Positions 1 through 28,952 of a stretch of 64,000 nucleotides of DNA are shown here, piece by piece. The stretch lies in NCBI GenBank assembly GCA_047495785.1, contig JBLDXI010000003.1, forward strand, positions 4,092,001 through 4,156,000, given 5' to 3'. The position numbers were made by a program, and so were the translations under genes. The stretch comes from Lepidodermella squamata. Lineage: Eukaryota; Animalia; Gastrotricha. The first letter of the stretch is position 1; each line of letters opens with the position of its first letter. The notes beneath the pieces were generated by a model. It saw only the letters and a list, made by a program, of their open reading frames with translations. It was not told the origin of the DNA and made no database searches.

Positions 1-353
1 TCTAGAAATTTGTGATCGTCCGGAAGAATTACGATGTCTCTGGTAGATAGGCTAGCTTTAATAGCCATAGAACTGCCGATAGGTTCGATGCAGGGATTTA
101 AAATCATCGCTTTGGCCCCAGGCTGGATTTTCTCAAAAAATCGACCTTTTAAATCAGTGATGACCAATCGAAATACGACGTTGCCATTCGCGTCATCAAC
201 AAGAGTTGCGACTTGAAGAGGCTTGAAAGGATTCCTTGATCGCACTACAACACCAATGAATCTGACAATCAGCGATTTTTGAATAAAACTGAACCCTCTG
301 GCTTGATAGCCGAGGTTTGCAATGCTCTGCAAGCCGATGCTAGTGCTCTCCAT
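1..353 (-). CDS. TPR + SET domain protein, copy 0 (5' part only; truncated by window edge)
   Basis: Identical to the start of the 610-aa ORF (ATG at 353) except T>C at 334, which gives D7G. Confidence 0.85.
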   Translation of the reverse strand, partial: MESTSIGLQSIANLGYQARGFSFIQKSLIVRFIGVVVRSRNPFKPLQVATLVDDANGNVVFRLVITDLKGRFFEKIQPGAKAMILNPCIEPIGSSMAIKASLSTRDIVILPDDHKFL

Positions 354-505
354 TTTTTCAAATGTAAATTGAAGTGGCGAGTCGCGCTGCTTTTACACGC
401 AACTGGCGTGACTCATCTTACAAAATACGTCCAAAATGAATAATATACTCATTGATAAAGCACACGTTATTCTGTTTATTTCCCAAAGATAAGAAGGAAT
501 AATTC

Positions 506-819
506 CTAGGAAATCTGCTCTGCTGAGCACTTTGCCCATATCATTCCTTTTTGGGTCACTTCGGTCAGACTTGAGGCAGAAATTGCCAAGCAGCATTGCT
601 GGAAAGTATTTGCAGATTCGAATGTCTTGTTTTAGAAGAACAAATTTCCCAAATTCAATTGAAGAGAAGAAATTCAAGAATTTATTACCTCAGATGCATT
701 AGCGACCGCCAACGGAAAATTGATGCAGGAACGAGGGGAGCCACTTGCCACATAAGGACCGGGTGTTTTATTGACGAAGCAAACGCCCTGAACAGCATTG
801 TCTTTTCCCGCCATTCTAA
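506..819 (-). pseudogene. 5'-truncated duplicate of secreted Cys-rich gene A (3' half of exon 3, intron 3, exon 4); repeated at 3100-3413, 5694-6007, 8288-8601, 10882-11195
   Basis: Matches 13476-13789 of the intact gene and lacks exons 1-2 (signal peptide). It is fused at the junction to the 3' flank of the SET gene. Confidence 0.85.
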
Positions 820-1114
820 CGCATGTACCCAGAGAGCGTGTGTATTCTTTTGGAAAAATCTCAGCGATATGTGGTATCCGAAATGTACCCATTTGCCTTA
901 ATCGACTCTCGCATCCTCTTGAAAAGTGAGTTAATCTTCCAAATTGGGAGTGAAATTATTGTATTCTGTATGAATAGGCTGATTGAGAGGATAATGGCAT
1001 TTCTGTTAGAAAAAACCCAGCCGGTGAAACCAAAAATGTAAAAAATTATTTTATCAGTTTTTATTGCGAGCGTCATCGATTGCATTTCCTTTATAGTTAT
1101 TAATGTTGGCACAC

Positions 1115-2947
1115 TTATTCAGACATTAGTTTATCGAATAGCTTCGGGCTACCAGGCCAAATAAGTGTCAACTCGGCAAGTCGTGACGGCCACTGCTTGA
1201 AATGCTTCCGGCGCATGTTGCTGTCAAGGTGGCGGAAAAGCGTTGCAGGGAAAACGAGGGCTGCTTCTAGAGCATGGATTTTCATCAAAGCTTGATAGAA
1301 TTCTTCCATTAAAGCGGATGCTCGAAATAGTCCTCGATCGGTAGTTGCGAGACCTGAGCAGAGGCTAGGAATGATGTGAAGGGCGACAGGATTTAACTCT
1401 AAACATGGACGTATCCGGCATGCTTTCGCAAGTAATTCTTCCAAATGGCCCAAGTTTTGTTTTGAAAATTTCTTCGAGGCGGTTATCCTGTCAGCCGAGA
1501 GCTTGATCATGCTGAGAGCGGAAAGATTTGCGGCTGAATCTTTCCGATCCATTTCGCACAGGCGGCATCTGCATTCGAAGCCAAATTTCTCTCGCAGCGA
1601 CTTTTCCCTTGTCTGGAAGTCTTCGAAAGGTGTACAGTAGTCCCACAAGAGTTGTTCGCCTTTTCGAACTTTGCGAGTTACGCAGACAAATAAAAAGCGG
1701 CCGATGAAAGTTCGGCAGCAATTTGTGTCTACGCAGCTGTGATTTATATAGCTCGGCATTATCCAAAGTCCACAGCCATAGTTTCCTTTGTTATTAGCAA
1801 TATACGTCTCCATTGAAAGAGAATTGTGGTTGACGATAGCAGCTAGGGTTTCAGCGCCTTCATCCGTAAAGGGATCTCTGCTTTTCGACTCGATTTTCGC
1901 GCCACAATATAGCTTATAGAACTCCTCGGATATATCTGGTCGAGCGTCCAATTTTTCTATTACCGCTACAAGAAAATCTGCTGACTGACTCTCATCACAC
2001 GCAGAGTGAGGCTGAGGGAAATAGTTGAAAGCTCGCTCTGCTATTACCAAAGTCCCAGGTTCAATATCGGTTGTTGCGACTAGGCCTCGCCCATAACCAT
2101 CAATTTCCTCGATTTGAAGCATATTGCTTGCAAAGTAGTTGGCATGGTTGCTCAGCATAGGATCGCTTTTAGCCTCGTCGATCATTTTCATTTCATCGAA
2201 ATCTCCAGTAGTTGATTCTTTCAAGCCTCGCTCAGCCTGAGCCAAGAAAAGCTTTTCAAAACCTGGCTTCCCGCAGACGAGTTCGATACATTCTTGGTAT
2301 CGATCAAGTTTCATCAGCGAGCTAGCTTTCCGCAATAGAAGCTTTGGATTGCTAGGATCGATTTCCAGCCCTATTTCAGCATCTTTCAAAGCTTGAATTG
2401 GTCGGTCCATTGCAAGGAAAGCCGCTGATTTGTTCACCAAGATTTTTACTATGGCGTCGTTGTCAGAATTTCCAGCTAGCTGTTGAGCTCTTTCGAAACA
2501 GGCTATCGCCAACTCGAATTCACTTGTTTTGTAGAAGCCAACGCCGAGTGAGTTGAAGTTGATTGCATCAATAGATCTATGCCATTCTATTCCTTCTAGA
2601 AATTTGTGATCGTCCGGAAGAATTACGATGTCTCTGGTAGATAGGCTAGCTTTAATAGCCATAGAACTGCCGATAGGTTCGATGCAGGGATTTAAAATCA
2701 TCGCTTTGGCCCCAGGCTGGATTTTCTCAAAAAATCGACCTTTTAAATCAGTGATGACCAATCGAAATACGACGTTGCCATTCGCGTCATCAACAAGAGT
2801 TGCGACTTGAAGAGGCTTGAAAGGATTCCTTGATCGCACTACAACACCAATGAATCTGACAATCAGCGATTTTTGAATAAAACTGAACCCTCTGGCTTGA
2901 TAGCCGAGGTTTGCAATGCTCTGCAAGTCGATGCTAGTGCTCTCCAT
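1115..2947 (-). CDS. Intronless TPR + SET/post-SET putative protein-lysine methyltransferase, copy 1 (C422)
   Basis: 610 aa. TPR helices (NSLGVGFYKTSEFELAIACFERA; NKSAAFLAMDRPIQALKDAE; KLLLRKASSLMKLDRYQEC), SET motifs GYGRGLVAT, SYINHSC and KGEQLLWDY, post-SET FGFECRCRLC. AATAAA on the minus strand at 1060-1065. Confidence 0.9.
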   Translation of the reverse strand: MESTSIDLQSIANLGYQARGFSFIQKSLIVRFIGVVVRSRNPFKPLQVATLVDDANGNVVFRLVITDLKGRFFEKIQPGAKAMILNPCIEPIGSSMAIKASLSTRDIVILPDDHKFLEGIEWHRSIDAINFNSLGVGFYKTSEFELAIACFERAQQLAGNSDNDAIVKILVNKSAAFLAMDRPIQALKDAEIGLEIDPSNPKLLLRKASSLMKLDRYQECIELVCGKPGFEKLFLAQAERGLKESTTGDFDEMKMIDEAKSDPMLSNHANYFASNMLQIEEIDGYGRGLVATTDIEPGTLVIAERAFNYFPQPHSACDESQSADFLVAVIEKLDARPDISEEFYKLYCGAKIESKSRDPFTDEGAETLAAIVNHNSLSMETYIANNKGNYGCGLWIMPSYINHSCVDTNCCRTFIGRFLFVCVTRKVRKGEQLLWDYCTPFEDFQTREKSLREKFGFECRCRLCEMDRKDSAANLSALSMIKLSADRITASKKFSKQNLGHLEELLAKACRIRPCLELNPVALHIIPSLCSGLATTDRGLFRASALMEEFYQALMKIHALEAALVFPATLFRHLDSNMRRKHFKQWPSRLAELTLIWPGSPKLFDKLMSE

Positions 2948-3708
2948 TTTTTCAAATGTAAATTGAAGTGGCGAGTCGCGCTGCTTTTACACGCAACTGG
3001 CGTGACTCATCTTACAAAATACGTCCAAAATGAATAATATACTCATTGATAAAGCACACGTTATTCTGTTTATTTCCCAAAGATAAGAAGGAATAATTCC
3101 TAGGAAATCTGCTCTGCTGAGCACTTTGCCCATATCATTCCTTTTTGGGTCACTTCGGTTAGACTTGATGCAGAAATTGCCAAGCAGCATTGCTGGAAAG
3201 TATTTGCAGATTCGAATGTCTTGTTTTAGAAGAACAAATTTCCCAAATTCAATTGAAGAGAAGAAATTCAAGAATTTATTACCTCAGATGCATTAGCGAC
3301 CGCCAACGGAAAATTGATGCAGGAACGAGGGGAGCCACTTGCCACATAAGGACCGGGTGTTTTATTGACGAAGCAAACGCCCTGAACAGCATTGTCTTTT
3401 CCCGCCATTCTAACGCATGTACCCAGAGAGCGTGTGTATTCTTTTGGAAAAATCTCAGCGATATGTGGTATCCGAAATGTACCCATTTGCCTTAATCGAC
3501 TCTCGCATCCTCTTGAAAAGTGAGTTAATCTTCCAAATTGGGAGTGAAATTATTGTATTCTGTATGAATAGGCTGATTGAGAGGATAATGGCATTTCTGT
3601 TAGAAAAAACCCAGCCGGTGAAACCAAAAATGTAAAAAATTATTTTATCAGTTTTTATTGCGAGCGTCATCGATTGCATTTCCTTTATAGTTATTAATGT
3701 TGGCACAC

Positions 3709-5541
3709 TTATTCAGACATTAGTTTATCGAATAGCTTCGGGCTACCAGGCCAAATAAGTGTCAACTCGGCAAGTCGTGACGGCCACTGCTTGAAATGCT
3801 TCCGGCGCATGTTGCTGTCAAGGTGGCGGAAAAGCGTTGCAGGGAAAACGAGGGCTGCTTCTAGAGCATGGATTTTCATCAAAGCTTGATAGAATTCTTC
3901 CATTAAAGCGGATGCTCGAAATAGTCCTCGATCGGTAGTTGCGAGACCTGAGCAGAGGCTAGGAATGATGTGAAGGGCGACAGGATTTAACTCTAAACAT
4001 GGACGTATCCGGCATGCTTTCGCAAGTAATTCTTCCAAATGGCCCAAGTTTTGTTTTGAAAATTTCTTCGAGGCGGTTATCCTGTCAGCCGAGAGCTTGA
4101 TCATGCTGAGAGCGGAAAGATTTGCGGCTGAATCTTTCCGATCCATTTCGCACAGGCGGCATCTGCATTCGAAGCCAAATTTCTCTCGCAGCGACTTTTC
4201 CCTTGTCTGGAAGTCTTCGAAAGGTGTACAGTAGTCCCACAAGAGTTGTTCGCCTTTTCGAACTTTGCGAGTTACGCGGACAAATAAAAAGCGGCCGATG
4301 AAAGTTCGGCAGCAATTTGTGTCTACGCAGCTGTGATTTATATAGCTCGGCATTATCCAAAGTCCACAGCCATAGTTTCCTTTGTTATTAGCAATATACG
4401 TCTCCATTGAAAGAGAATTGTGGTTGACGATAGCAGCTAGGGTTTCAGCGCCTTCATCCGTAAAGGGATCTCTGCTTTTCGACTCGATTTTCGCGCCACA
4501 ATATAGCTTATAGAACTCCTCGGATATATCTGGTCGAGCGTCCAATTTTTCTATTACCGCTACAAGAAAATCTGCTGACTGACTCTCATCACACGCAGAG
4601 TGAGGCTGAGGGAAATAGTTGAAAGCTCGCTCTGCTATTACCAAAGTCCCAGGTTCAATATCGGTTGTTGCGACTAGGCCTCGCCCATAACCATCAATTT
4701 CCTCGATTTGAAGCATATTGCTTGCAAAGTAGTTGGCATGGTTGCTCAGCATAGGATCGCTTTTAGCCTCGTCGATCATTTTCATTTCATCGAAATCTCC
4801 AGTAGTTGATTCTTTCAAGCCTCGCTCAGCCTGAGCCAAGAAAAGCTTTTCAAAACCTGGCTTCCCGCAGACGAGTTCGATACATTCTTGGTATCGATCA
4901 AGTTTCATCAGCGAGCTAGCTTTCCGCAATAGAAGCTTTGGATTGCTAGGATCGATTTCCAGCCCTATTTCAGCATCTTTCAAAGCTTGAATTGGTCGGT
5001 CCATTGCAAGGAAAGCCGCTGATTTGTTCACCAAGATTTTTACTATGGCGTCGTTGTCAGAATTTCCAGCTAGCTGTTGAGCTCTTTCGAAACAGGCTAT
5101 CGCCAACTCGAATTCACTTGTTTTGTAGAAGCCAACGCCGAGTGAGTTGAAGTTGATTGCATCAATAGATCTATGCCATTCTATTCCTTCTAGAAATTTG
5201 TGATCGTCCGGAAGAATTACGATGTCTCTGGTAGATAGGCTAGCTTTAATAGCCATAGAACTGCCGATAGGTTCGATGCAGGGATTTAAAATCATCGCTT
5301 TGGCCCCAGGCTGGATTTTCTCAAAAAATCGACCTTTTAAATCAGTGATGACCAATCGAAATACGACGTTGCCATTCGCGTCATCAACAAGAGTTGCGAC
5401 TTGAAGAGGCTTGAAAGGATTCCTTGATCGCACTACAACACCAATGAATCTGACAATCAGCGATTTTTGAATAAAACTGAACCCTCTGGCTTGATAGCCG
5501 AGGTTTGCAATGCTCTGCAAGTCGATGCTAGTGCTCTCCAT
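3709..5541 (-). CDS. TPR + SET domain protein, copy 2 (R422)
   Basis: Same 610-aa ORF as copy 1 with C422R. Confidence 0.9.
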   Translation of the reverse strand: MESTSIDLQSIANLGYQARGFSFIQKSLIVRFIGVVVRSRNPFKPLQVATLVDDANGNVVFRLVITDLKGRFFEKIQPGAKAMILNPCIEPIGSSMAIKASLSTRDIVILPDDHKFLEGIEWHRSIDAINFNSLGVGFYKTSEFELAIACFERAQQLAGNSDNDAIVKILVNKSAAFLAMDRPIQALKDAEIGLEIDPSNPKLLLRKASSLMKLDRYQECIELVCGKPGFEKLFLAQAERGLKESTTGDFDEMKMIDEAKSDPMLSNHANYFASNMLQIEEIDGYGRGLVATTDIEPGTLVIAERAFNYFPQPHSACDESQSADFLVAVIEKLDARPDISEEFYKLYCGAKIESKSRDPFTDEGAETLAAIVNHNSLSMETYIANNKGNYGCGLWIMPSYINHSCVDTNCCRTFIGRFLFVRVTRKVRKGEQLLWDYCTPFEDFQTREKSLREKFGFECRCRLCEMDRKDSAANLSALSMIKLSADRITASKKFSKQNLGHLEELLAKACRIRPCLELNPVALHIIPSLCSGLATTDRGLFRASALMEEFYQALMKIHALEAALVFPATLFRHLDSNMRRKHFKQWPSRLAELTLIWPGSPKLFDKLMSE

Positions 5542-6302
5542 TTTTTCAAATGTAAATTGAAGTGGCGAGTCGCGCTGCTTTTACACGCAACTGGCGTGAC
5601 TCATCTTACAAAATACGTCCAAAATGAATAATATACTCATTGATAAAGCACACGTTATTCTGTTTATTTCCCAAAGATAAGAAGGAATAATTCCTAGGAA
5701 ATCTGCTCTGCTGAGCACTTTGCCCATATCATTCCTTTTTGGGTCACTTCGGTCAGACTTGAGGCAGAAATTGCCAAGCAGCATTGCTGGAAAGTATTTG
5801 CAGATTCGAATGTCTTGTTTTAGAAGAACAAATTTCCCAAATTCAATTGAAGAGAAGAAATTCAAGAATTTATTACCTCAGATGCATTAGCGACCGCCAA
5901 CGGAAAATTGATGCAGGAACGAGGGGAGCCACTTGCCACATAAGGACCGGGTGTTTTATTGACGAAGCAAACGCCCTGAACAGCATTGTCTTTTCCCGCC
6001 ATTCTAACGCATGTACCCAGAGAGCGTGTGTATTCTTTTGGAAAAATCTCAGCGATATGTGGTATCCGAAATGTACCCATTTGCCTTAATCGACTCTCGC
6101 ATCCTCTTGAAAAGTGAGTTAATCTTCCAAATTGGGAGTGAAATTATTGTATTCTGTATGAATAGGCTGATTGAGAGGATAATGGCATTTCTGTTAGAAA
6201 AAACCCAGCCGGTGAAACCAAAAATGTAAAAAATTATTTTATCAGTTTTTATTGCGAGCGTCATCGATTGCATTTCCTTTATAGTTATTAATGTTGGCAC
6301 AC

Positions 6303-8135
6303 TTATTCAGACATTAGTTTATCGAATAGCTTCGGGCTACCAGGCCAAATAAGTGTCAACTCGGCAAGTCGTGACGGCCACTGCTTGAAATGCTTCCGGC
6401 GCATGTTGCTGTCAAGGTGGCGGAAAAGCGTTGCAGGGAAAACGAGGGCTGCTTCTAGAGCATGGATTTTCATCAAAGCTTGATAGAATTCTTCCATTAA
6501 AGCGGATGCTCGAAATAGTCCTCGATCGGTAGTTGCGAGACCTGAGCAGAGGCTAGGAATGATGTGAAGGGCGACAGGATTTAACTCTAAACATGGACGT
6601 ATCCGGCATGCTTTCGCAAGTAATTCTTCCAAATGGCCCAAGTTTTGTTTTGAAAATTTCTTCGAGGCGGTTATCCTGTCAGCCGAGAGCTTGATCATGC
6701 TGAGAGCGGAAAGATTTGCGGCTGAATCTTTCCGATCCATTTCGCACAGGCGGCATCTGCATTCGAAGCCAAATTTCTCTCGCAGCGACTTTTCCCTTGT
6801 CTGGAAGTCTTCGAAAGGTGTACAGTAGTCCCACAAGAGTTGTTCGCCTTTTCGAACTTTGCGAGTTACGCAGACAAATAAAAAGCGGCCGATGAAAGTT
6901 CGGCAGCAATTTGTGTCTACGCAGCTGTGATTTATATAGCTCGGCATTATCCAAAGTCCACAGCCATAGTTTCCTTTGTTATTAGCAATATACGTCTCCA
7001 TTGAAAGAGAATTGTGGTTGACGATAGCAGCTAGGGTTTCAGCGCCTTCATCCGTAAAGGGATCTCTGCTTTTCGACTCGATTTTCGCGCCACAATATAG
7101 CTTATAGAACTCCTCGGATATATCTGGTCGAGCGTCCAATTTTTCTATTACCGCTACAAGAAAATCTGCTGACTGACTCTCATCACACGCAGAGTGAGGC
7201 TGAGGGAAATAGTTGAAAGCTCGCTCTGCTATTACCAAAGTCCCAGGTTCAATATCGGTTGTTGCGACTAGGCCTCGCCCATAACCATCAATTTCCTCGA
7301 TTTGAAGCATATTGCTTGCAAAGTAGTTGGCATGGTTGCTCAGCATAGGATCGCTTTTAGCCTCGTCGATCATTTTCATTTCATCGAAATCTCCAGTAGT
7401 TGATTCTTTCAAGCCTCGCTCAGCCTGAGCCAAGAAAAGCTTTTCAAAACCTGGCTTCCCGCAGACGAGTTCGATACATTCTTGGTATCGATCAAGTTTC
7501 ATCAGCGAGCTAGCTTTCCGCAATAGAAGCTTTGGATTGCTAGGATCGATTTCCAGCCCTATTTCAGCATCTTTCAAAGCTTGAATTGGTCGGTCCATTG
7601 CAAGGAAAGCCGCTGATTTGTTCACCAAGATTTTTACTATGGCGTCGTTGTCAGAATTTCCAGCTAGCTGTTGAGCTCTTTCGAAACAGGCTATCGCCAA
7701 CTCGAATTCACTTGTTTTGTAGAAGCCAACGCCGAGTGAGTTGAAGTTGATTGCATCAATAGATCTATGCCATTCTATTCCTTCTAGAAATTTGTGATCG
7801 TCCGGAAGAATTACGATGTCTCTGGTAGATAGGCTAGCTTTAATAGCCATAGAACTGCCGATAGGTTCGATGCAGGGATTTAAAATCATCGCTTTGGCCC
7901 CAGGCTGGATTTTCTCAAAAAATCGACCTTTTAAATCAGTGATGACCAATCGAAATACGACGTTGCCATTCGCGTCATCAACAAGAGTTGCGACTTGAAG
8001 AGGCTTGAAAGGATTCCTTGATCGCACTACAACACCAATGAATCTGACAATCAGCGATTTTTGAATAAAACTGAACCCTCTGGCTTGATAGCCGAGGTTT
8101 GCAATGCTCTGCAAGTCGATGCTAGTGCTCTCCAT
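6303..8135 (-). CDS. TPR + SET domain protein, copy 3 (C422)
   Basis: Same 610-aa ORF as copy 1. Confidence 0.9.
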   Translation of the reverse strand: MESTSIDLQSIANLGYQARGFSFIQKSLIVRFIGVVVRSRNPFKPLQVATLVDDANGNVVFRLVITDLKGRFFEKIQPGAKAMILNPCIEPIGSSMAIKASLSTRDIVILPDDHKFLEGIEWHRSIDAINFNSLGVGFYKTSEFELAIACFERAQQLAGNSDNDAIVKILVNKSAAFLAMDRPIQALKDAEIGLEIDPSNPKLLLRKASSLMKLDRYQECIELVCGKPGFEKLFLAQAERGLKESTTGDFDEMKMIDEAKSDPMLSNHANYFASNMLQIEEIDGYGRGLVATTDIEPGTLVIAERAFNYFPQPHSACDESQSADFLVAVIEKLDARPDISEEFYKLYCGAKIESKSRDPFTDEGAETLAAIVNHNSLSMETYIANNKGNYGCGLWIMPSYINHSCVDTNCCRTFIGRFLFVCVTRKVRKGEQLLWDYCTPFEDFQTREKSLREKFGFECRCRLCEMDRKDSAANLSALSMIKLSADRITASKKFSKQNLGHLEELLAKACRIRPCLELNPVALHIIPSLCSGLATTDRGLFRASALMEEFYQALMKIHALEAALVFPATLFRHLDSNMRRKHFKQWPSRLAELTLIWPGSPKLFDKLMSE

Positions 8136-8896
8136 TTTTTCAAATGTAAATTGAAGTGGCGAGTCGCGCTGCTTTTACACGCAACTGGCGTGACTCATCT
8201 TACAAAATACGTCCAAAATGAATAATATACTCATTGATAAAGCACACGTTATTCTGTTTATTTCCCAAAGATAAGAAGGAATAATTCCTAGGAAATCTGC
8301 TCTGCTGAGCACTTTGCCCATATCATTCCTTTTTGGGTCACTTCGGTCAGACTTGAGGCAGAAATTGCCAAGCAGCATTGCTGGAAAGTATTTGCAGATT
8401 CGAATGTCTTGTTTTAGAAGAACAAATTTCCCAAATTCAATTGAAGAGAAGAAATTCAAGAATTTATTACCTCAGATGCATTAGCGACCGCCAACGGAAA
8501 ATTGATGCAGGAACGAGGGGAGCCACTTGCCACATAAGGACCGGGTGTTTTATTGACGAAGCAAACGCCCTGAACAGCATTGTCTTTTCCCGCCATTCTA
8601 ACGCATGTACCCAGAGAGCGTGTGTATTCTTTTGGAAAAATCTCAGCGATATGTGGTATCCGAAATGTACCCATTTGCCTTAATCGACTCTCGCATCCTC
8701 TTGAAAAGTGAGTTAATCTTCCAAATTGGGAGTGAAATTATTGTATTCTGTATGAATAGGCTGATTGAGAGGATAATGGCATTTCTGTTAGAAAAAACCC
8801 AGCCGGTGAAACCAAAAATGTAAAAAATTATTTTATCAGTTTTTATTGCGAGCGTCATCGATTGCATTTCCTTTATAGTTATTAATGTTGGCACAC

Positions 8897-10729
8897 TTAT
8901 TCAGACATTAGTTTATCGAATAGCTTCGGGCTACCAGGCCAAATAAGTGTCAACTCGGCAAGTCGTGACGGCCACTGCTTGAAATGCTTCCGGCGCATGT
9001 TGCTGTCAAGGTGGCGGAAAAGCGTTGCAGGGAAAACGAGGGCTGCTTCTAGAGCATGGATTTTCATCAAAGCTTGATAGAATTCTTCCATTAAAGCGGA
9101 TGCTCGAAATAGTCCTCGATCGGTAGTTGCGAGACCTGAGCAGAGGCTAGGAATGATGTGAAGGGCGACAGGATTTAACTCTAAACATGGACGTATCCGG
9201 CATGCTTTCGCAAGTAATTCTTCCAAATGGCCCAAGTTTTGTTTTGAAAATTTCTTCGAGGCGGTTATCCTGTCAGCCGAGAGCTTGATCATGCTGAGAG
9301 CGGAAAGATTTGCGGCTGAATCTTTCCGATCCATTTCGCACAGGCGGCATCTGCATTCGAAGCCAAATTTCTCTCGCAGCGACTTTTCCCTTGTCTGGAA
9401 GTCTTCGAAAGGTGTACAGTAGTCCCACAAGAGTTGTTCGCCTTTTCGAACTTTGCGAGTTACGCGGACAAATAAAAAGCGGCCGATGAAAGTTCGGCAG
9501 CAATTTGTGTCTACGCAGCTGTGATTTATATAGCTCGGCATTATCCAAAGTCCACAGCCATAGTTTCCTTTGTTATTAGCAATATACGTCTCCATTGAAA
9601 GAGAATTGTGGTTGACGATAGCAGCTAGGGTTTCAGCGCCTTCATCCGTAAAGGGATCTCTGCTTTTCGACTCGATTTTCGCGCCACAATATAGCTTATA
9701 GAACTCCTCGGATATATCTGGTCGAGCGTCCAATTTTTCTATTACCGCTACAAGAAAATCTGCTGACTGACTCTCATCACACGCAGAGTGAGGCTGAGGG
9801 AAATAGTTGAAAGCTCGCTCTGCTATTACCAAAGTCCCAGGTTCAATATCGGTTGTTGCGACTAGGCCTCGCCCATAACCATCAATTTCCTCGATTTGAA
9901 GCATATTGCTTGCAAAGTAGTTGGCATGGTTGCTCAGCATAGGATCGCTTTTAGCCTCGTCGATCATTTTCATTTCATCGAAATCTCCAGTAGTTGATTC
10001 TTTCAAGCCTCGCTCAGCCTGAGCCAAGAAAAGCTTTTCAAAACCTGGCTTCCCGCAGACGAGTTCGATACATTCTTGGTATCGATCAAGTTTCATCAGC
10101 GAGCTAGCTTTCCGCAATAGAAGCTTTGGATTGCTAGGATCGATTTCCAGCCCTATTTCAGCATCTTTCAAAGCTTGAATTGGTCGGTCCATTGCAAGGA
10201 AAGCCGCTGATTTGTTCACCAAGATTTTTACTATGGCGTCGTTGTCAGAATTTCCAGCTAGCTGTTGAGCTCTTTCGAAACAGGCTATCGCCAACTCGAA
10301 TTCACTTGTTTTGTAGAAGCCAACGCCGAGTGAGTTGAAGTTGATTGCATCAATAGATCTATGCCATTCTATTCCTTCTAGAAATTTGTGATCGTCCGGA
10401 AGAATTACGATGTCTCTGGTAGATAGGCTAGCTTTAATAGCCATAGAACTGCCGATAGGTTCGATGCAGGGATTTAAAATCATCGCTTTGGCCCCAGGCT
10501 GGATTTTCTCAAAAAATCGACCTTTTAAATCAGTGATGACCAATCGAAATACGACGTTGCCATTCGCGTCATCAACAAGAGTTGCGACTTGAAGAGGCTT
10601 GAAAGGATTCCTTGATCGCACTACAACACCAATGAATCTGACAATCAGCGATTTTTGAATAAAACTGAACCCTCTGGCTTGATAGCCGAGGTTTGCAATG
10701 CTCTGCAAGTCGATGCTAGTGCTCTCCAT
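8897..10729 (-). CDS. TPR + SET domain protein, copy 4 (R422)
   Basis: Same 610-aa ORF with C422R. Confidence 0.9.
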   Translation of the reverse strand: MESTSIDLQSIANLGYQARGFSFIQKSLIVRFIGVVVRSRNPFKPLQVATLVDDANGNVVFRLVITDLKGRFFEKIQPGAKAMILNPCIEPIGSSMAIKASLSTRDIVILPDDHKFLEGIEWHRSIDAINFNSLGVGFYKTSEFELAIACFERAQQLAGNSDNDAIVKILVNKSAAFLAMDRPIQALKDAEIGLEIDPSNPKLLLRKASSLMKLDRYQECIELVCGKPGFEKLFLAQAERGLKESTTGDFDEMKMIDEAKSDPMLSNHANYFASNMLQIEEIDGYGRGLVATTDIEPGTLVIAERAFNYFPQPHSACDESQSADFLVAVIEKLDARPDISEEFYKLYCGAKIESKSRDPFTDEGAETLAAIVNHNSLSMETYIANNKGNYGCGLWIMPSYINHSCVDTNCCRTFIGRFLFVRVTRKVRKGEQLLWDYCTPFEDFQTREKSLREKFGFECRCRLCEMDRKDSAANLSALSMIKLSADRITASKKFSKQNLGHLEELLAKACRIRPCLELNPVALHIIPSLCSGLATTDRGLFRASALMEEFYQALMKIHALEAALVFPATLFRHLDSNMRRKHFKQWPSRLAELTLIWPGSPKLFDKLMSE

Positions 10730-11490
10730 TTTTTCAAATGTAAATTGAAGTGGCGAGTCGCGCTGCTTTTACACGCAACTGGCGTGACTCATCTTACAAA
10801 ATACGTCCAAAATGAATAATATACTCATTGATAAAGCACACGTTATTCTGTTTATTTCCCAAAGATAAGAAGGAATAATTCCTAGGAAATCTGCTCTGCT
10901 GAGCACTTTGCCCATATCATTCCTTTTTGGGTCACTTCGGTCAGACTTGAGGCAGAAATTGCCAAGCAGCATTGCTGGAAAGTATTTGCAGATTCGAATG
11001 TCTTGTTTTAGAAGAACAAATTTCCCAAATTCAATTGAAGAGAAGAAATTCAAGAATTTATTACCTCAGATGCATTAGCGACCGCCAACGGAAAATTGAT
11101 GCAGGAACGAGGGGAGCCACTTGCCACATAAGGACCGGGTGTTTTATTGACGAAGCAAACGCCCTGAACAGCATTGTCTTTTCCCGCCATTCTAACGCAT
11201 GTACCCAGAGAGCGTGTGTATTCTTTTGGAAAAATCTCAGCGATATGTGGTATCCGAAATGTACCCATTTGCCTTAATCGACTCTCGCATCCTCTTGAAA
11301 AGTGAGTTAATCTTCCAAATTGGGAGTGAAATTATTGTATTCTGTATGAATAGGCTGATTGAGAGGATAATGGCATTTCTGTTAGAAAAAACCCAGCCGG
11401 TGAAACCAAAAATGTAAAAAATTATTTTATCAGTTTTTATTGCGAGCGTCATCGATTGCATTTCCTTTATAGTTATTAATGTTGGCACAC

Positions 11491-13323
11491 TTATTCAGAC
11501 ATTAGTTTATCGAATAGCTTCGGGCTACCAGGCCAAATAAGTGTCAACTCGGCAAGTCGTGACGGCCACTGCTTGAAATGCTTCCGGCGCATGTTGCTGT
11601 CAAGGTGGCGGAAAAGCGTTGCAGGGAAAACGAGGGCTGCTTCTAGAGCATGGATTTTCATCAAAGCTTGATAGAATTCTTCCATTAAAGCGGATGCTCG
11701 AAATAGTCCTCGATCGGTAGTTGCGAGACCTGAGCAGAGGCTAGGAATGATGTGAAGGGCGACAGGATTTAACTCTAAACATGGACGTATCCGGCATGCT
11801 TTCGCAAGTAATTCTTCCAAATGGCCCAAGTTTTGTTTTGAAAATTTCTTCGAGGCGGTTATCCTGTCAGCCGAGAGCTTGATCATGCTGAGAGCGGAAA
11901 GATTTGCGGCTGAATCTTTCCGATCCATTTCGCACAGGCGGCATCTGCATTCGAAGCCAAATTTCTCTCGCAGCGACTTTTCCCTTGTCTGGAAGTCTTC
12001 GAAAGGTGTACAGTAGTCCCACAAGAGTTGTTCGCCTTTTCGAACTTTGCGAGTTACGCGGACAAATAAAAAGCGGCCGATGAAAGTTCGGCAGCAATTT
12101 GTGTCTACGCAGCTGTGATTTATATAGCTCGGCATTATCCAAAGTCCACAGCCATAGTTTCCTTTGTTATTAGCAATATACGTCTCCATTGAAAGAGAAT
12201 TGTGGTTGACGATAGCAGCTAGGGTTTCAGCGCCTTCATCCGTAAAGGGATCTCTGCTTTTCGACTCGATTTTCGCGCCACAATATAGCTTATAGAACTC
12301 CTCGGATATATCTGGTCGAGCGTCCAATTTTTCTATTACCGCTACAAGAAAATCTGCTGACTGACTCTCATCACACGCAGAGTGAGGCTGAGGGAAATAG
12401 TTGAAAGCTCGCTCTGCTATTACCAAAGTCCCAGGTTCAATATCGGTTGTTGCGACTAGGCCTCGCCCATAACCATCAATTTCCTCGATTTGAAGCATAT
12501 TGCTTGCAAAGTAGTTGGCATGGTTGCTCAGCATAGGATCGCTTTTAGCCTCGTCGATCATTTTCATTTCATCGAAATCTCCAGTAGTTGATTCTTTCAA
12601 GCCTCGCTCAGCCTGAGCCAAGAAAAGCTTTTCAAAACCTGGCTTCCCGCAGACGAGTTCGATACATTCTTGGTATCGATCAAGTTTCATCAGCGAGCTA
12701 GCTTTCCGCAATAGAAGCTTTGGATTGCTAGGATCGATTTCCAGCCCTATTTCAGCATCTTTCAAAGCTTGAATTGGTCGGTCCATTGCAAGGAAAGCCG
12801 CTGATTTGTTCACCAAGATTTTTACTATGGCGTCGTTGTCAGAATTTCCAGCTAGCTGTTGAGCTCTTTCGAAACAGGCTATCGCCAACTCGAATTCACT
12901 TGTTTTGTAGAAGCCAACGCCGAGTGAGTTGAAGTTGATTGCATCAATAGATCTATGCCATTCTATTCCTTCTAGAAATTTGTGATCGTCCGGAAGAATT
13001 ACGATGTCTCTGGTAGATAGGCTAGCTTTAATAGCCATAGAACTGCCGATAGGTTCGATGCAGGGATTTAAAATCATCGCTTTGGCCCCAGGCTGGATTT
13101 TCTCAAAAAATCGACCTTTTAAATCAGTGATGACCAATCGAAATACGACGTTGCCATTCGCGTCATCAACAAGAGTTGCGACTTGAAGAGGCTTGAAAGG
13201 ATTCCTTGATCGCACTACAACACCAATGAATCTGACAATCAGCGATTTTTGAATAAAACTGAACCCTCTGGCTTGATAGCCGAGGTTTGCAATGCTCTGC
13301 AAGTCGATGCTAGTGCTCTCCAT
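11491..13323 (-). CDS. TPR + SET domain protein, copy 5 (R422), terminal copy next to unique sequence
   Basis: Same 610-aa ORF. Its ATG lies 152 bp downstream of the stop of secreted gene A. Confidence 0.9.
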   Translation of the reverse strand: MESTSIDLQSIANLGYQARGFSFIQKSLIVRFIGVVVRSRNPFKPLQVATLVDDANGNVVFRLVITDLKGRFFEKIQPGAKAMILNPCIEPIGSSMAIKASLSTRDIVILPDDHKFLEGIEWHRSIDAINFNSLGVGFYKTSEFELAIACFERAQQLAGNSDNDAIVKILVNKSAAFLAMDRPIQALKDAEIGLEIDPSNPKLLLRKASSLMKLDRYQECIELVCGKPGFEKLFLAQAERGLKESTTGDFDEMKMIDEAKSDPMLSNHANYFASNMLQIEEIDGYGRGLVATTDIEPGTLVIAERAFNYFPQPHSACDESQSADFLVAVIEKLDARPDISEEFYKLYCGAKIESKSRDPFTDEGAETLAAIVNHNSLSMETYIANNKGNYGCGLWIMPSYINHSCVDTNCCRTFIGRFLFVRVTRKVRKGEQLLWDYCTPFEDFQTREKSLREKFGFECRCRLCEMDRKDSAANLSALSMIKLSADRITASKKFSKQNLGHLEELLAKACRIRPCLELNPVALHIIPSLCSGLATTDRGLFRASALMEEFYQALMKIHALEAALVFPATLFRHLDSNMRRKHFKQWPSRLAELTLIWPGSPKLFDKLMSE

Positions 13324-13475
13324 TTTTTCAAATGTAAATTGAAGTGGCGAGTCGCGCTGCTTTTACACGCAACTGGCGTGACTCATCTTACAAAATACGT
13401 CCAAAATGAATAATATACTCATTGATAAAGCACACGTTATTCTGTTTATTTCCCAAAGATAAGAAGGAATAATTC

Positions 13476-14229
13476 CTAGGAAATCTGCTCTGCTGAGCAC
13501 TTTGCCCATATCATTCCTTTTTGGGTCACTTCGGTTAGACTTGATGCAGAAATTGCCAAGCAGCATTGCTGGAAAGTATTTGCAGATTCGAATGTCTTGT
13601 TTTAGAAGAACAAATTTCCCAAATTCAATTGAAGAGAAGAAATTCAAGAATTTATTACCTCAGATGCATTAGCGACCGCCAACGGAAAATTGATGCAGGA
13701 ACGAGGGGAGCCACTTGCCACATAAGGACCGGGTGTTTTATTGACGAAGCAAACGCCCTGAACAGCATTGTCTTTTCCAGCCATTCTAATCATATTGTAA
13801 TTTAGCACGTCTTTACTTTGAACTTTCAAGCTAGCACAACAAGCGTCGAAGCTCACAAACTGTCCAACAGGCCCCTTCTATAAACATAGAGAGGAGGGGT
13901 ATTAGGATTTTTGTAAAATTTCCTAAAGCAAGGATCTCACCAGGTCGGCATCTATACCAGTGCAATTGCCACTTGTAGTGCAGAACGAAAATGACCCTAC
14001 GAATAGTTGCGGCGATGAAGTAAAGCTGCACGTTTGAAACTGCGTTCATCTCAATTAAATAGGCTGCGGCATAAGTTGGAAACAATTATTTTACCGATCC
14101 CGCTGCTGTGGTGTCCGCCGCCGGGGGCATCTTCCCGCTTCCACTCATGTCTCCCCCGAGACAAGCATCCGACGAACGTGAAAGCAAGGTTAAACTGAAG
14201 AACGTTATTACAAGAACCTGACTTGCCAT
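13476..14229 (-). CDS. Secreted cysteine-rich protein A, 4 exons, 190 aa, unknown family
   Basis: Exons 14229-14095, 14039-13941, 13877-13659, 13595-13476, all phase-0 GT-AG. Protein MASQVLVITFFSLTLLSRSSDACLGG...FQTCSFTSSPQLFVGSFSFCTTSGNCTGID...SFDACC...QGVCFVN...SCINFP...TFQQCCLAIS...MIWAKCSAEQIS*. Signal-peptide-like N-terminus; AATAAA at 13445-13450. Confidence 0.85.
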
Positions 14230-24960: not shown

Positions 24961-27900
24961 TTACAGAGTCGACGAAGCTGTAGCAACAGGTGCCGGAGAA
25001 ACGTCGTCCTTCAGCCGCTTAATCGGCGGCTGCTGGCTGTCGGGCGCGTTCGCCTCGCCGGAAATATTGTTATTGTTTGCGGCTGCGGCGTTCGCTGCCG
25101 ATGCGCTGTTGCTGCCGGCGCTATTCACCGGCACGACGTAGATTTTGGCCGCCCCCGAGCCGCCGGCCACTACTGCAGCGGCTGCGGCTGACGACGACGA
25201 TGACGAGGAGACGGGCGCAAAAGAACGCGACGGAATGCTGCCCGGCCCACCGACCTGCAATAAACACAACAATAAATTATAGAACCGCGTGCGCACGTGA
25301 ATTATTGATGATGAGTCAACGCACCTTAATCGACGGCGACGATGAGGCTGTCAGCGTGATTATCGACGGCTTACTCGCTGCGCCCACTGTCGGCCGCGCC
25401 GATATCGCCGTGTTGAACGCGCTGGGGTTGCCAGACGCCGAGGCCGGTGTGATGATCAGATTCGAAGATTTCGGGGCAGGCACTTGAAAATTCGAAACCG
25501 GCGCCGATGATTGCGTTACGACCTGATGCGCCGCACCAGCTGCTTGGATCGACGCAACGACCTGCGAACAAAATTGAAAAAAATATTAATACAAAATAAA
25601 ATATCCCCCTTAACAATTTTTTCAAAAGTGAAATTTTAAATGTGATCTTTAGCAAGTGGCGAAATTTGTAGCGTTTTCAGATGACAATAACAACAATAAC
25701 AACAAGAAGCTGATAGCTGGGGTTTGCTTGGAAACTGGGCTGGCAAGTTTTCAAGCAAAAAAATCCGAGCTGATAACATTTAAATTTGATTGCATCACTT
25801 AATTATCCGCCTCTCTTTAAATGTCATGATTATTGCTACAGCAAGCTCTGATCTTTCGACGAAATATTGAGTTTTTCCGTCATTTAAGGAGGACGGGGGA
25901 GCATCCCGGGGATTCAAAAATTAAAATCTACACAAAAAACTGGTTCAGGGCTTAATGGAAGCTCTTTCCCAAATCAAAGCACTTTTTGAGATTTCATTGA
26001 AAAATCGAAATTTTTTGCGAAGCTATCACTATCGGTCACATGCATGATTATCGAAATTCGATTTTTTCATCCAATTTCTCGGCACAAACGCTTTAAATTT
26101 TGCTTTCAATTACCTGAGGGTATAAACGCGGCCCGCGGAGGTCGGCCCGGGCTTGCATTATGTCGAGGCTGTACAAGGGTTCAGCGAGGGGTACATCGGT
26201 GCTGCCTCGTGACGCATCGAGCACAGCGATGGGTACTTCTCGAACAGCATGCGCGACTCGATGCTCAAGCACGAAGTAGATGTACTCATCGAACAGCAAC
26301 CGGATCAAGTGAAAAGAGCCGAAACTGTGCGCCGAACGCAGCGTCAGATCGCGAATGACCATCGAGTTGTAAAACGACCATTTCAGGAGGAAAGAGCGAG
26401 ACGCCTCGGCGAGGGCCTGCGCCTGCTTCTCGCCGCTAGAGTACGACGCCTGCATCGCCGGCTGCAAGGCCATGTCGACGACGCTCTCCAACCACGCCGC
26501 CCAGTTGTCGAGCGAATTTTCAATCGATAACAGCCGCTTCAGATCAGATTCGATCTGCTTCACGACTTTCGTCTCGCAGGACGTCACCCACGCGGCTTGC
26601 TCTTGAACATTAGCGAAGTCGACTCGGTTCAAATCAGCGACCATTTGCTGCAAATGCTCAGGCGCTTGCAACACAGCTCGAGCTGCCTGCGCTAAATGGT
26701 TGAGGGAAGTGTAGCGACGCAGCGTTTGGGCAAACGCAACAGCTGGGCCGAGTTTAGACCGAACCGCCTCTTCCGGCATGCCGGACATGGCATTTTTCAG
26801 CCACGACTCCATACCCTTGGCGAAGTTTCGGATCTGCTGCGTTAGCTGACTCGGAATAGCGCGCAGCATGTCGGGCAGTAGCGTGTAGACCAGCGACTGG
26901 TACAGGGCTGAATCGACCCGGCGCATGTAGATTTGCACGAAAGGAAGCGCGCTGATGTGAGCCAGCTTAATACGCGGCAGTCTCGCATCGCCCTCGCCCG
27001 AGTCATTCGGCCGGTTGACGCGTCGCGGGCCTTCTTCATCCTCCTCATCGGTGACTTCCTCGTCGATTTCTTCATCGAGATCCTCCTCAAATTCAGCGCC
27101 GTTCCGACCTCGAATATTCGAGCCACGTCCGCGCTGTTGGTTAGAAGAGGCCTCACCGCCACGCCAGAACGACGCCCATACTTGCTCGATTAGGGTGAAT
27201 TGCAGATTAACGACGAGATCGACCACGTTTTCGCAGTGCTCGCGGTAGAGCTGTTCGAAAATGCGGATATCTTGCTCGGAGACGTCGTTACTCAGCGATC
27301 CGGCGGGTATTTCGATCGATTCGAAACGAGGTAGCGCCAGGGTAACATCACCCAGGTATTGCTGTTGGGGCGAGACATTCGACGCAGCCATGCCGTTATT
27401 GCCACCACTAGCGTCAACGTTACTCGAGGCGCCGGCTGCCGCAGGTTGATGACCGACTGACGGCGGCATGGGCGCAGGGGTTCCAATGACTGTAATCGTA
27501 GTCGTTGGCTGTTGATTCTGCCCACCGTCGAACCGGCCGCCAGAAACGCCGGACCGATTTCCGAATTTCTTCTGCTGCGGCGGGGATGAGTACTGCCGAC
27601 CCGCGGCCGCCATTATCATGTCCTCCGTGACATTGACCAGCGGGGAGGTTGCTTTTATTCTAATACCATAGTAATGATACTTTGAATTGCCTCGCGTTCC
27701 TAAACGGCGAGTTCGAAGTCCGAGAAACACCGATCGGATGAGCTTGCCGAAAGAAGCCGGGTTCATGGGTTCGAGTTTTTCCTCCTCGCAATGACGCATG
27801 TAATGCGCGTAGATTGTCGAGCGGGGTAACGAGACGCCGTCGGATGTTTCGTAGTTGTCGACCAGCCATTGCACGGTGGCGGGTGACGCCCGCGTTGTGT

Positions 27901-28952
27901 GGGCTAGCGTATGCGAATCGCCGTCTACGCTGGTTGTCGTCTGCAGGATGTAAGCACCCGATGAATAAAGCACTTGGCCAGGAGCCGCGTTCGACTGCTG
28001 GTTGTTACCCCCACCGCCTCCGCCGCCGCTCGACTGGTGGTGCTGGTAGTAGGCGGGAGCGGCCTGGGCGTACAGGGTGTGCGGGCCGCCGTAGTCAAAC
28101 GCGGCCGCCGCGTGTTGATACTGGTTCGAGACTTGTTGCGATTGTTGTTGGTTATTTTGCTGCTGGTGGTCAGAACCAGCGCTGTGAAGCTGATACACGG
28201 ACATTTGTTGAGGACCAGGGGTTGATTGACCTCCTGAGCCAGCACCTGCGCCTGCTCCGGTGGCTATTACAGCATAACTTGTAGTACCACTGCCAGCTGC
28301 TTTGCTTTGCATAGCCGGCGACGGGCTCGGGTGGGAAGAGGAAGTTGCTGACGATGCAGCTATGGGGAAGGTCGACGGGACCGCGCGGCGGAAAATTACG
28401 GGTTTCACGGTTGCGGTTGTAACTTGTTGAGTTTGAGCCGACGCCGTGGTGTTTTCTTTGACCAATGACGAAGTCGTCAATGACTTAGTCTGTATTGGAA
28501 AACAATAAATCAATAATAATCGACTGGTATAAACTGAGACGGAAATAAACACGTGTAAGGGGCTTTGTGAAGCAATTCTGTGCATTTTAATTAGAACGCA
28601 AAAGGAGGACTAAAATTATAAATAGTTTAATTTCGCAAAAAATGATAGGTATTAATAATTCATTGATAATTGAACTCAGTGAGCGCAGTGAACAGCTACT
28701 AAAAACTCATGTCACGCTTGTATTCCAACTTACCAAATGCAACAATCGACTATAATACAAAATATCATTGACTTAACACTTGCAGAATATTGGCAGATAG
28801 TGAATACTTATTTTTATGAATTTTTACACGCACGCAGTACGCGACTTGTAGATGCAACTTACAGATGATTGCTGAGTCAAAATGTGGGCCATCAAACCGC
28901 CAGCAAATATCTCCTTATTTCCGAATGAAGACGTAGTTTTGGCTTCGGACAT
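24961..28952 (-). CDS. RFX: RFX-family transcription factor (RFX1/2/3, daf-19 type)
   Basis: Winged-helix RFX DBD HTTRASPATVQWLVDNYE...NPASFGKLIRSVFLGLRTRRLGTRGNSKYHYYGIRIK. B/C/dimerization motifs LYREHC, LRRYTSLNHLAQAARAVL and FLLKWSFY...RDLTLRSAHSFGSFHLIRLLFDEY. Exons 28952-28863, 28489-26114, 25561-25325, 25254-24961. Confidence 0.95.

Follow-up and report, generated by a model that had tools for sequence, protein, structure and literature searches.

The closest described relatives of the gene studied here are a group of 'TPR-SET' proteins, described as specific to filamentous fungi and Arabidopsis At1g26760 (Veerappan et al., 2008; PMC2474616), and ATXR1, which is reported to lack a zinc finger (PMC4521844). 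The literature that we searched names no substrate for any TPR-SET/ATXR1-like member. In the better-known SMYD enzymes, the MYND finger is a partner-recruiting module. The gene that is amplified in the window (the whole 64-kb stretch of Lepidodermella squamata DNA analysed here) is a new animal member of this known TPR-SET/ATXR1-like family, and belongs to a radiation that is old, specific to this host and at least 14 paralogs strong. Its product, we infer, is a SAM-dependent protein lysine methyltransferase that looks active and falls within the SMYD/SET5-6 superfamily, on its TPR-SET (ATXR1-like) branch. We are fairly confident of this identity and class, and of the gene's standing as an old family member of its own genome, a judgement kept apart from those on substrate and origin that are given below.

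The complete coding sequence, 610 codons followed by TAA (stop at 11491–11493), occupies 11491–13323 on the minus strand as an intact, uninterrupted ATG-to-TAA frame, delimited by the ORF listing, the alignment with homologs and a cDNA-type contig (11422–13270). The architecture of the protein is confirmed as, from its N-terminus and all on the minus strand, an OB-fold domain (residues 1–124; 12952–13323), a three-repeat TPR module with linker helices (residues 125–262; 12538–12951), a MYND-less split SET domain composed of N-SET, a helical SET-I insert and C-SET (residues 277–440; 12004–12495), the post-SET cysteine motif FECRCRLC (residues 457–464; 11932–11955) and a helical, SMYD-CTD-like C-terminal domain (residues 465–610; 11494–11931). 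The TPR module was located by Pfam (TPR_1/TPR_2 at residues 132–160 of the 610-aa protein) and by alignment with TOM70, and the SET domain by Pfam, alignment with SMYD3, a motif table and Foldseek. The Pfam SET match itself (residues 286–437, E 1.7e-12) runs ~50 residues beyond the 105-position model, which indicates a split SET. The original prediction of a split SET domain without a MYND finger was borne out, as the 610-aa protein gave no Pfam match to zf-MYND (PF01753) even at E<=1, none of the 28 family members scanned has a MYND domain, and only two cysteines lie between N-SET and C-SET. The SET motifs read GYGRGL, NHSC (residues 402–405) and Tyr437, and C405 is invariant across the family together with C459, C461 and C464 of the post-SET motif (alignments A1 and A2). 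A phmmer search against the PDB found SMYD3 at E=1e-10 and aligned residues 388–472, spanning NHSC, the catalytic Tyr and an FxCxCxxC post-SET motif. The full-length AlphaFold2 model (pLDDT 85.3, pTM 0.81), in which helices of the C-terminal domain cover residues 472–609, retrieved SMYD2 and SMYD3 as the best Foldseek matches (E ~1e-10 over ~440 columns, including the C-terminal domain), followed by SMYD1, SETD3 and Toxoplasma AKMT.

The N-terminal domain had been called OB-like from its letters, and structure prediction agrees: in the predicted model, it is confirmed as an OB fold of the RPA/SSB/Teb1-like kind, with a five-stranded closed beta-barrel and a capping helix. Folded alone, residues 1–124 gave a pLDDT of 89.7, and the 50 top VIA matches to this model were OB domains without exception (Z 9.1–11.9), among them Teb1 OB-A (11.9), RADX (11.7), RPA70 (11.1), hSSB1 (10.6) and the OB domain of TTC5 (9.7). 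Foldseek likewise returned OB folds for these residues (E 6e-5), and in the ESM Atlas the OB model resembled the N-termini of TPR+SET clusters from Ascomycota and Basidiomycota (TM 0.76–0.78). By residue count the domain carries a net charge of about +3, and D54 and P87 are nearly invariant in the family.

The TPR segment aligns with the N-terminal chaperone-clamp TPR of TOM70 (E 1e-10). Carboxylate-clamp TPR domains such as those of Hop and TOM70 bind the EEVD tails of Hsp70 and Hsp90 through a Lys and an Asn in helix A1, an Asn in A2 and a Lys and an Arg in A3. Measured against these five positions, the amplified protein keeps N172, K202 and R206, but the helix A1 pair ('K..GN') is absent and is represented by N132 and V136 ('N..GV'). 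With two of the five canonical clamp positions substituted, it is doubtful that the TPR module of the amplified protein would bind chaperone tails. All five clamp residues are present in several of the host paralogs and in most homologs from outside this genome.

Evidence of transcription comes from public data, for which four runs were mapped to exactly one unit of the array (11100–13693), the RNA evidence consisting of assembled contigs and not raw reads. In run X2, a cDNA-type contig of 1,869 nt runs collinearly with genomic positions 11422–13270 and ends at 11422 in 20 non-templated T (plus strand), that is, in a poly(A) tail on the gene strand. The polyadenylation site at about 11422 lies 14 nt past an AATAAA signal (11441–11436) and 69 nt past the stop codon, and delimits a 3' UTR of 69 nt (11422–11490, minus strand). 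In run X3, where a SMART cDNA adaptor forms a loose end, 11448–13361 is covered at depths of hundreds to thousands, as against 0–70 in the spacer; one contig spans 13124–13335, and depth is zero at 13362–13448. The 5' UTR is therefore short (13324–13361, minus strand), as contig coverage ends between 13335 and 13361. The absence of introns from the 610-codon frame, as originally proposed, is upheld both by the collinear cDNA-type contig and by an end-to-end alignment with homologs in one frame. This is thus a genuine nuclear gene whose transcript is polyadenylated and is not spliced within the coding sequence, the assembled contigs giving neither expression levels nor an assignment of transcripts among the 12 copies. 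The array unit also holds a separate spliced mini-transcript, with a small ORF in the spacer.

The gene lies in a tandem array with a period of 2594 bp, of which the part within the window spans 1–13789, as delimited by a self-identity profile and the ORF list. The period was measured by script; Tandem Repeats Finder, whose longest period is 500, gave nothing. Further intact ORFs of the same length occur at 1115–2947, 3709–5541, 6303–8135 and 8897–10729, all on the minus strand in the ORF list, so that five copies fall in the window, and there are 12 in the 121-Mb genome, every one intact. The whole array (C3:4,070,5xx–4,105,790, or 4070.5–4105.8 kb) consists of two blocks of six units separated by ~4 kb of unique DNA, and is interrupted by a perfect inverted repeat of 1,255 nt. 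Units are distinguished by a handful of sites and one 4-bp indel. Within the ORF, three sites vary among the 12 copies, all of them nonsynonymous (D7G, K353E and R422C), and dN/dS was set aside as these are too few to interpret. In the short-read DNA run X1, the units are merged in one circular contig of 2,624 nt at a depth of 463.2, and the junction contig at the right boundary, whose loose end matches the unique flank 13790–13819, has a depth of 38.7; the resulting ratio of 12.0 fits the 12 assembled copies, albeit in a run that is possibly the assembly's own sample and so perhaps not independent. Amplification to 12 tandem copies is very recent, and since each unit contains its own promoter region and the spliced mini-transcript, the copies arose by duplication at the DNA level.

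The array is embedded in a contig of 4.56 Mb and is flanked by metazoan genes. To its left are a ROR-type receptor kinase (Fz, Kringle and kinase domains) and Exo84, and to its right CUB-domain exons, an RFX1-3 ortholog, a PACT-domain gene, a 2-oxoacid dehydrogenase E2 and a primase large subunit. The RFX protein shares 44–50% identity with RFX of molluscs, echinoderms and vertebrates, and is closer only to a protein on a metagenome contig (68%). The intron-free gene had been contrasted with neighbours said nearly all to carry many short introns, which proves to be an overstatement. The CUB-domain gene (17.5–21.9 kb) does fit that description and tiles as many short-intron exons, but the RFX1-3 gene (26093–28585) is essentially one exon of 830 codons, the PACT-domain gene has an exon of 1,196 codons, the ROR-like kinase has two large exons, and exons of 350–1,200 codons occur in several neighbours. 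An intron-free gene of 1.8 kb is thus no outlier here. GC3 is 0.45 in the amplified gene and 0.53–0.66 in the conserved neighbours; we rejected the lower value as a sign of foreignness, a neighbouring orphan ORF and the background having the same 0.45.

In a six-frame search, the genome matched at 23 further places, distributed over 11 contigs and 25–47% identical (25–37% where matches exceed 100 residues). With the amplified gene itself, the family comprises at least 14 deeply diverged paralogs (20–37% identity), mostly intron-free and spread over at least 10 contigs, with tandem pairs or triplets on C19, C29 and C54. At least ten of the further matches each consist of one open frame (620–690 codons), three stop just past the SET core, and two are damaged, one by an in-frame TAA (the C48 paralog, which was excluded from alignments) and another by two TGA codons. 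The 14 host proteins used form one clade, whose support is 100 in a FastTree tree (166 rows) as well as in an IQ-TREE tree (61 rows, LG+C20). Catalytic motifs are unevenly preserved among them. GRG, NH[SA]C and the terminal Tyr are all kept in just two of the 14, the amplified gene and its sister on C46, according to the motif table, while the C20 paralog keeps NHTC and has lost the Tyr, and the rest have NH, Tyr or both replaced although the post-SET cysteines and TPR are retained. All outside homologs examined retain the three motifs. This distribution of residues suggests that most host family members may be non-catalytic, and that the amplified gene may be one of two active enzymes. A separate, canonical SMYD gene is encoded on C9 by a MYND exon and a 345-codon exon with a gap of ~37 nt.

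Beyond this genome, 1.84 billion representatives were searched exhaustively with phmmer, and 3,909 of them matched at E<=1e-3; of these, 774 reached E<=1e-10 and 16 reached E<=1e-30. A glomeromycete protein (6e-43, 36% identity) is the best match, and no outside protein in that search exceeded ~36% identity to the amplified protein; by BLASTP, no outside representative exceeded ~31% identity to any host paralog. The initial view of the protein as non-canonical and distinct from animal SMYDs agrees with these scores (the small PDB set gave SMYD3 at E=1e-10, whereas the glomeromycete reached 6e-43 among 1.8 billion) and with the separate MYND-bearing SMYD. Names were looked up for 30 of the 150 best outside representatives and obtained for 11, such that most tree tips are unlabelled. 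The named top matches belong to Glomeromycotina (Ambispora and Acaulospora) and Endogonales (Jimgerdemannia), and the Glomeromycotina clade holds the best outside match for nine of the 14 host paralogs. Other named members come from Ascomycota, a hop, a fern and a lycophyte, and the named animal members are Folsomia candida LOC118435851, which sits beside a hemocyanin gene, and Panagrolaimus davidi and Panagrolaimus sp. PS1159. One further member lies on a very compact, protist-like contig of 39 kb. In the ESM Atlas, the nearest clusters are Ascomycota TPR+SET proteins, and the family extends to a 96-member cluster in which Rotifera are commonest and to clusters labelled Streptophyta, Mucoromycota and diatom. 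The initial expectation of a TPR-SET family common in fungi and protists and patchy in animals thus matches what was recovered, namely fungi, plants, protist-like contigs and few animals. Proteins of Colletotrichum, Thozetella, Delitschia and Adiantum, together with metagenomic ones, align over the full length including the N-terminal domain (alignment A1). A word-index search with a 28-sequence family profile returned only nine proteins, with TPR words dominating. In the trees, which were built without a SMYD outgroup, the host clade stands among family members and is nested in no named subclade, with Folsomia and Panagrolaimus in two other well-supported clades; midpoint rooting sets the host clade opposite all else. 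Placement within vertically inherited SMYD4-like clades was not what emerged, SMYD4 having been compared by description.

How the gene came to be in this genome can be weighed from these observations. The original prediction allowed that it was retroposed, and a retroposed copy of an intron-containing parent would indeed have a coding sequence without introns. We consider this very improbable: no templated A-run follows the poly(A) site, the array period is the only duplication in the flanks, no intron-bearing parent was found among paralogs that are all intron-poor, many of them long single ORFs, the homologs of Folsomia (one intron of 49 nt) and Ambispora (~135 intronic nt) are intron-poor too, and the amplified unit carries a promoter region and the spliced mini-transcript. 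The near absence of introns from those two homologs also means that an intron-free coding sequence is no evidence for transfer. Still harder to credit is that the sequence is fungal DNA contaminating the sample or a repeat over-expanded in assembly, even if the best matches are fungal-type and the perfect inverted repeat could be a foldback artefact of long reads. The array lies between metazoan genes inside a megabase-scale contig, a context on which we rejected fungal contamination; its units bear distinct SNP and indel haplotypes; in an independent-looking short-read run, the collapsed unit is 12.0 times as deep as the boundary contig; and the sequence was found in runs from three studies. 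Integration in the host chromosome and expression, as expected of a transferred gene, are both observed. Recent or private transfer is ruled out by the depth of the in-genome radiation and by the low identity to all outside proteins, and horizontal acquisition is possible only as an old event that preceded the 14-member radiation.

To such an old event we give about an even chance. An ancestor would have taken up a fungal-type (Mucoromycota/Glomeromycotina-like) OB-TPR-SET gene that then radiated, with Folsomia, Panagrolaimus and rotifers acquiring theirs separately. The best named outside matches, in Glomeromycotina and Endogonales, point this way, as do the far greater distance of canonical animal SMYDs and the small number of named animal holders, all of them soil or moss micro-invertebrates, distributed over three distinct, well-supported clades. 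An AU test disfavoured a tree that unites the three groups containing animals (delta lnL 38.4, p 0.027), but these groups were picked after seeing the tree, in which most rows lack a name and may themselves be animals. An alien-index-type value of ~30 (ln 1.0e-29 minus ln 6.2e-43), the check proposed at the outset, leans towards transfer yet lies in the indeterminate range. Against acquisition, the host clade is within no fungal clade and is placed by the midpoint root opposite everything else, and identity to outside proteins is 36% at most. The early suggestion of a horizontally acquired gene therefore survives only as an old event, and loses ground to the lack of nesting in a donor clade, the ceiling of ~36% identity and the 14-member radiation. 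Plants, the diatom-labelled cluster and the protist-like contig also hold the family, which may be ancestral to eukaryotes, and an early-eukaryote TPR-SET family that most animals have lost, but that a few fast-evolving micro-invertebrate lineages retained and enlarged, is a possibility that we take seriously while thinking it somewhat improbable. It accords with the spread of the family across fungi, streptophytes, the diatom cluster, the protist-like contig and several animal phyla, with an old and deeply diverged host family, and with a base composition close to the local background (GC 0.45), and differential loss has been preferred to transfer for odd groups of animal SMYDs (PMC4521844). 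Such descent would however call for many independent losses in animal phyla that are well sampled, and in the trees the animal members do not form a single clade.

As for what the protein does, the SET core, the post-SET cysteine cluster, presumably of the zinc-binding type, and the C-terminal lid would together bind SAM and the substrate lysine as in SMYD2 and SMYD3. The OB fold and the three-repeat TPR module, which is of the co-chaperone type known from TOM70 and RPAP3, may take the place of MYND in recruiting substrates or partners. SMYD2 and SMYD3 act largely on non-histone proteins, and because of this, together with the co-chaperone type of the TPR, the target of the amplified enzyme is most likely, by analogy, a cytosolic non-histone protein. 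A fuller scenario, which we offer as speculative and think unlikely to be right in all its parts, is that a fungal-type gene was taken up long ago, that most of its descendants became dead scaffolds, and that selection for dosage (in stress tolerance, say, or in conflict with fungi or other microbes) drove the twelve-fold amplification of one of the two active members, which would methylate a non-histone target recruited through the OB and TPR domains.

TPR-SET/ATXR1-like methyltransferases are widespread, and this locus provides an expressed, catalytically intact-looking, high-dosage animal member. The paralogs of the same genome that have lost catalytic residues make up a natural series for studying the methylation targets of the family and the partners that its OB and TPR domains recognize. 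The locus also adds to the genes patchily common to fungi and soil micro-invertebrates, and bears on the extent of real transfer into animals. Nothing is overturned by these results; the annotation is refined and the claim of horizontal transfer is tempered.

Set against known systems, the protein shares features with several and the full combination with one. TTC5/STRAP also combines TPR with OB, and its OB domain is among those that resemble our model, but there the TPR precedes the OB, an enzymatic domain is lacking, and similarity at the sequence level was not detected. SMYD4 likewise has a TPR N-terminal to a split SET and then a CTD; it differs in having MYND and no OB (PMC4521844), is set apart here by description, and by score the relatives of the amplified protein are instead the fungal TPR-SET proteins. 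With SMYD2 and SMYD3 the protein has in common a split SET with a SET-I insert, NHSC, the catalytic Tyr, the post-SET cysteine cluster and a helical CTD, whereas it lacks their MYND, carries the OB and TPR as extra N-terminal domains, and resembles them in sequence only over C-SET and post-SET (residues 366–473). The closest correspondence is to the fungal TPR-SET proteins and ATXR1/SDG35 (At1g26760; database name 'methyltransferase FGSG_00040'), with which it shares, over the whole length, the module order of OB-like domain, TPR, split SET, CxCxxC and helical C-terminal domain, as well as the lack of a zinc finger and identical catalytic motifs. Identity to these proteins is nonetheless 20–36%, the host clade lies apart from the named fungal and plant clades, and here the family is an expanded animal one with a 12-copy tandem array.

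Each amplified unit of the array carries a second small transcript in its spacer, encoded on the same strand as the OB-TPR-SET methyltransferase gene. In the window copy (13476–13784, minus strand), the first exon runs from an ATG at 13784–13782 to 13659 (42 codons) and is followed by a 63-nt, phase 0 intron with canonical GT-AG borders (13658–13596), a second exon of 39 codons plus a TAG stop (13595–13476), and an AATAAA polyadenylation signal at 13450–13445, all on the minus strand. Translation covered the two exons individually. The splice joint is present in contigs from two cDNA-type runs, and cDNA depth falls to zero between this transcript and the SET mRNA. Each unit therefore contains two transcription units, the SET gene and a small spliced transcript. 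As for the sequencing runs themselves, the DNA run (X1) and one cDNA-type run (X2) are filed as organism A and the other cDNA-type run (X3) as organism B, and in the run that bears the differing label, 133 of 146 contigs contain the array unit with at least 99% identity. Either the labels stand for one species or for two very close ones, or one label is wrong.

The array is divided into two six-unit blocks by a segment of ~4 kb, outside the window, that contains a perfect 1,255-nt inverted repeat with a 1,516-nt loop (arms at G000:C3:4086251–4087505 and 4089022–4090276 of the host assembly, corresponding to 4251–5505 and 7022–8276 of extracted locus L014). The edges of this segment duplicate array junction sequences, with 189 nt of the right flank at 99.5% and 35–56 nt of the left flank. 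The inverted repeat could be a genuine palindromic rearrangement or a foldback artefact of long reads.

Elsewhere in the window, an RFX1-3 ortholog (26093–28585, minus strand) consists of essentially one exon of 830 codons, a near-single-exon structure that is unusual among animal RFX genes; a metagenomic relative, 68% identical, is likewise a single gene of 845 codons.

The paralog scoring best against the array gene (G000:C48:940555–942324, L015; 37% identity, 403 bits) has one in-frame TAA, and is possibly a pseudogene or the product of a sequencing error. Most host paralogs (contigs C19, C24, C23, C29, C1, C7 and C54; loci L017–L027) have intact ORFs of 460–690 codons and retain the TPRs and post-SET cysteines; their NH motif and/or catalytic Tyr are gone, making them candidate pseudo-methyltransferases. 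Contig C54 also has eight zf-MYND matches inside 18 kb (G000:C54:2251765–2269192). The open frames that contain them are short, 81–115 codons apiece, and one includes a stop codon; the arrangement resembles a group of small MYND-finger genes or exons repeated in tandem.

Tandem arrangement is also seen for several host paralogs: C29 carries three, and C19 and C54 carry two each, with 75% identity between the C54 pair. Tandem duplication of the family extends beyond the host genome, as a metagenomic eukaryote contig (L037) carries two paralogs in tandem (1083–3314 and 5988–8330; 743 and 780 residues).
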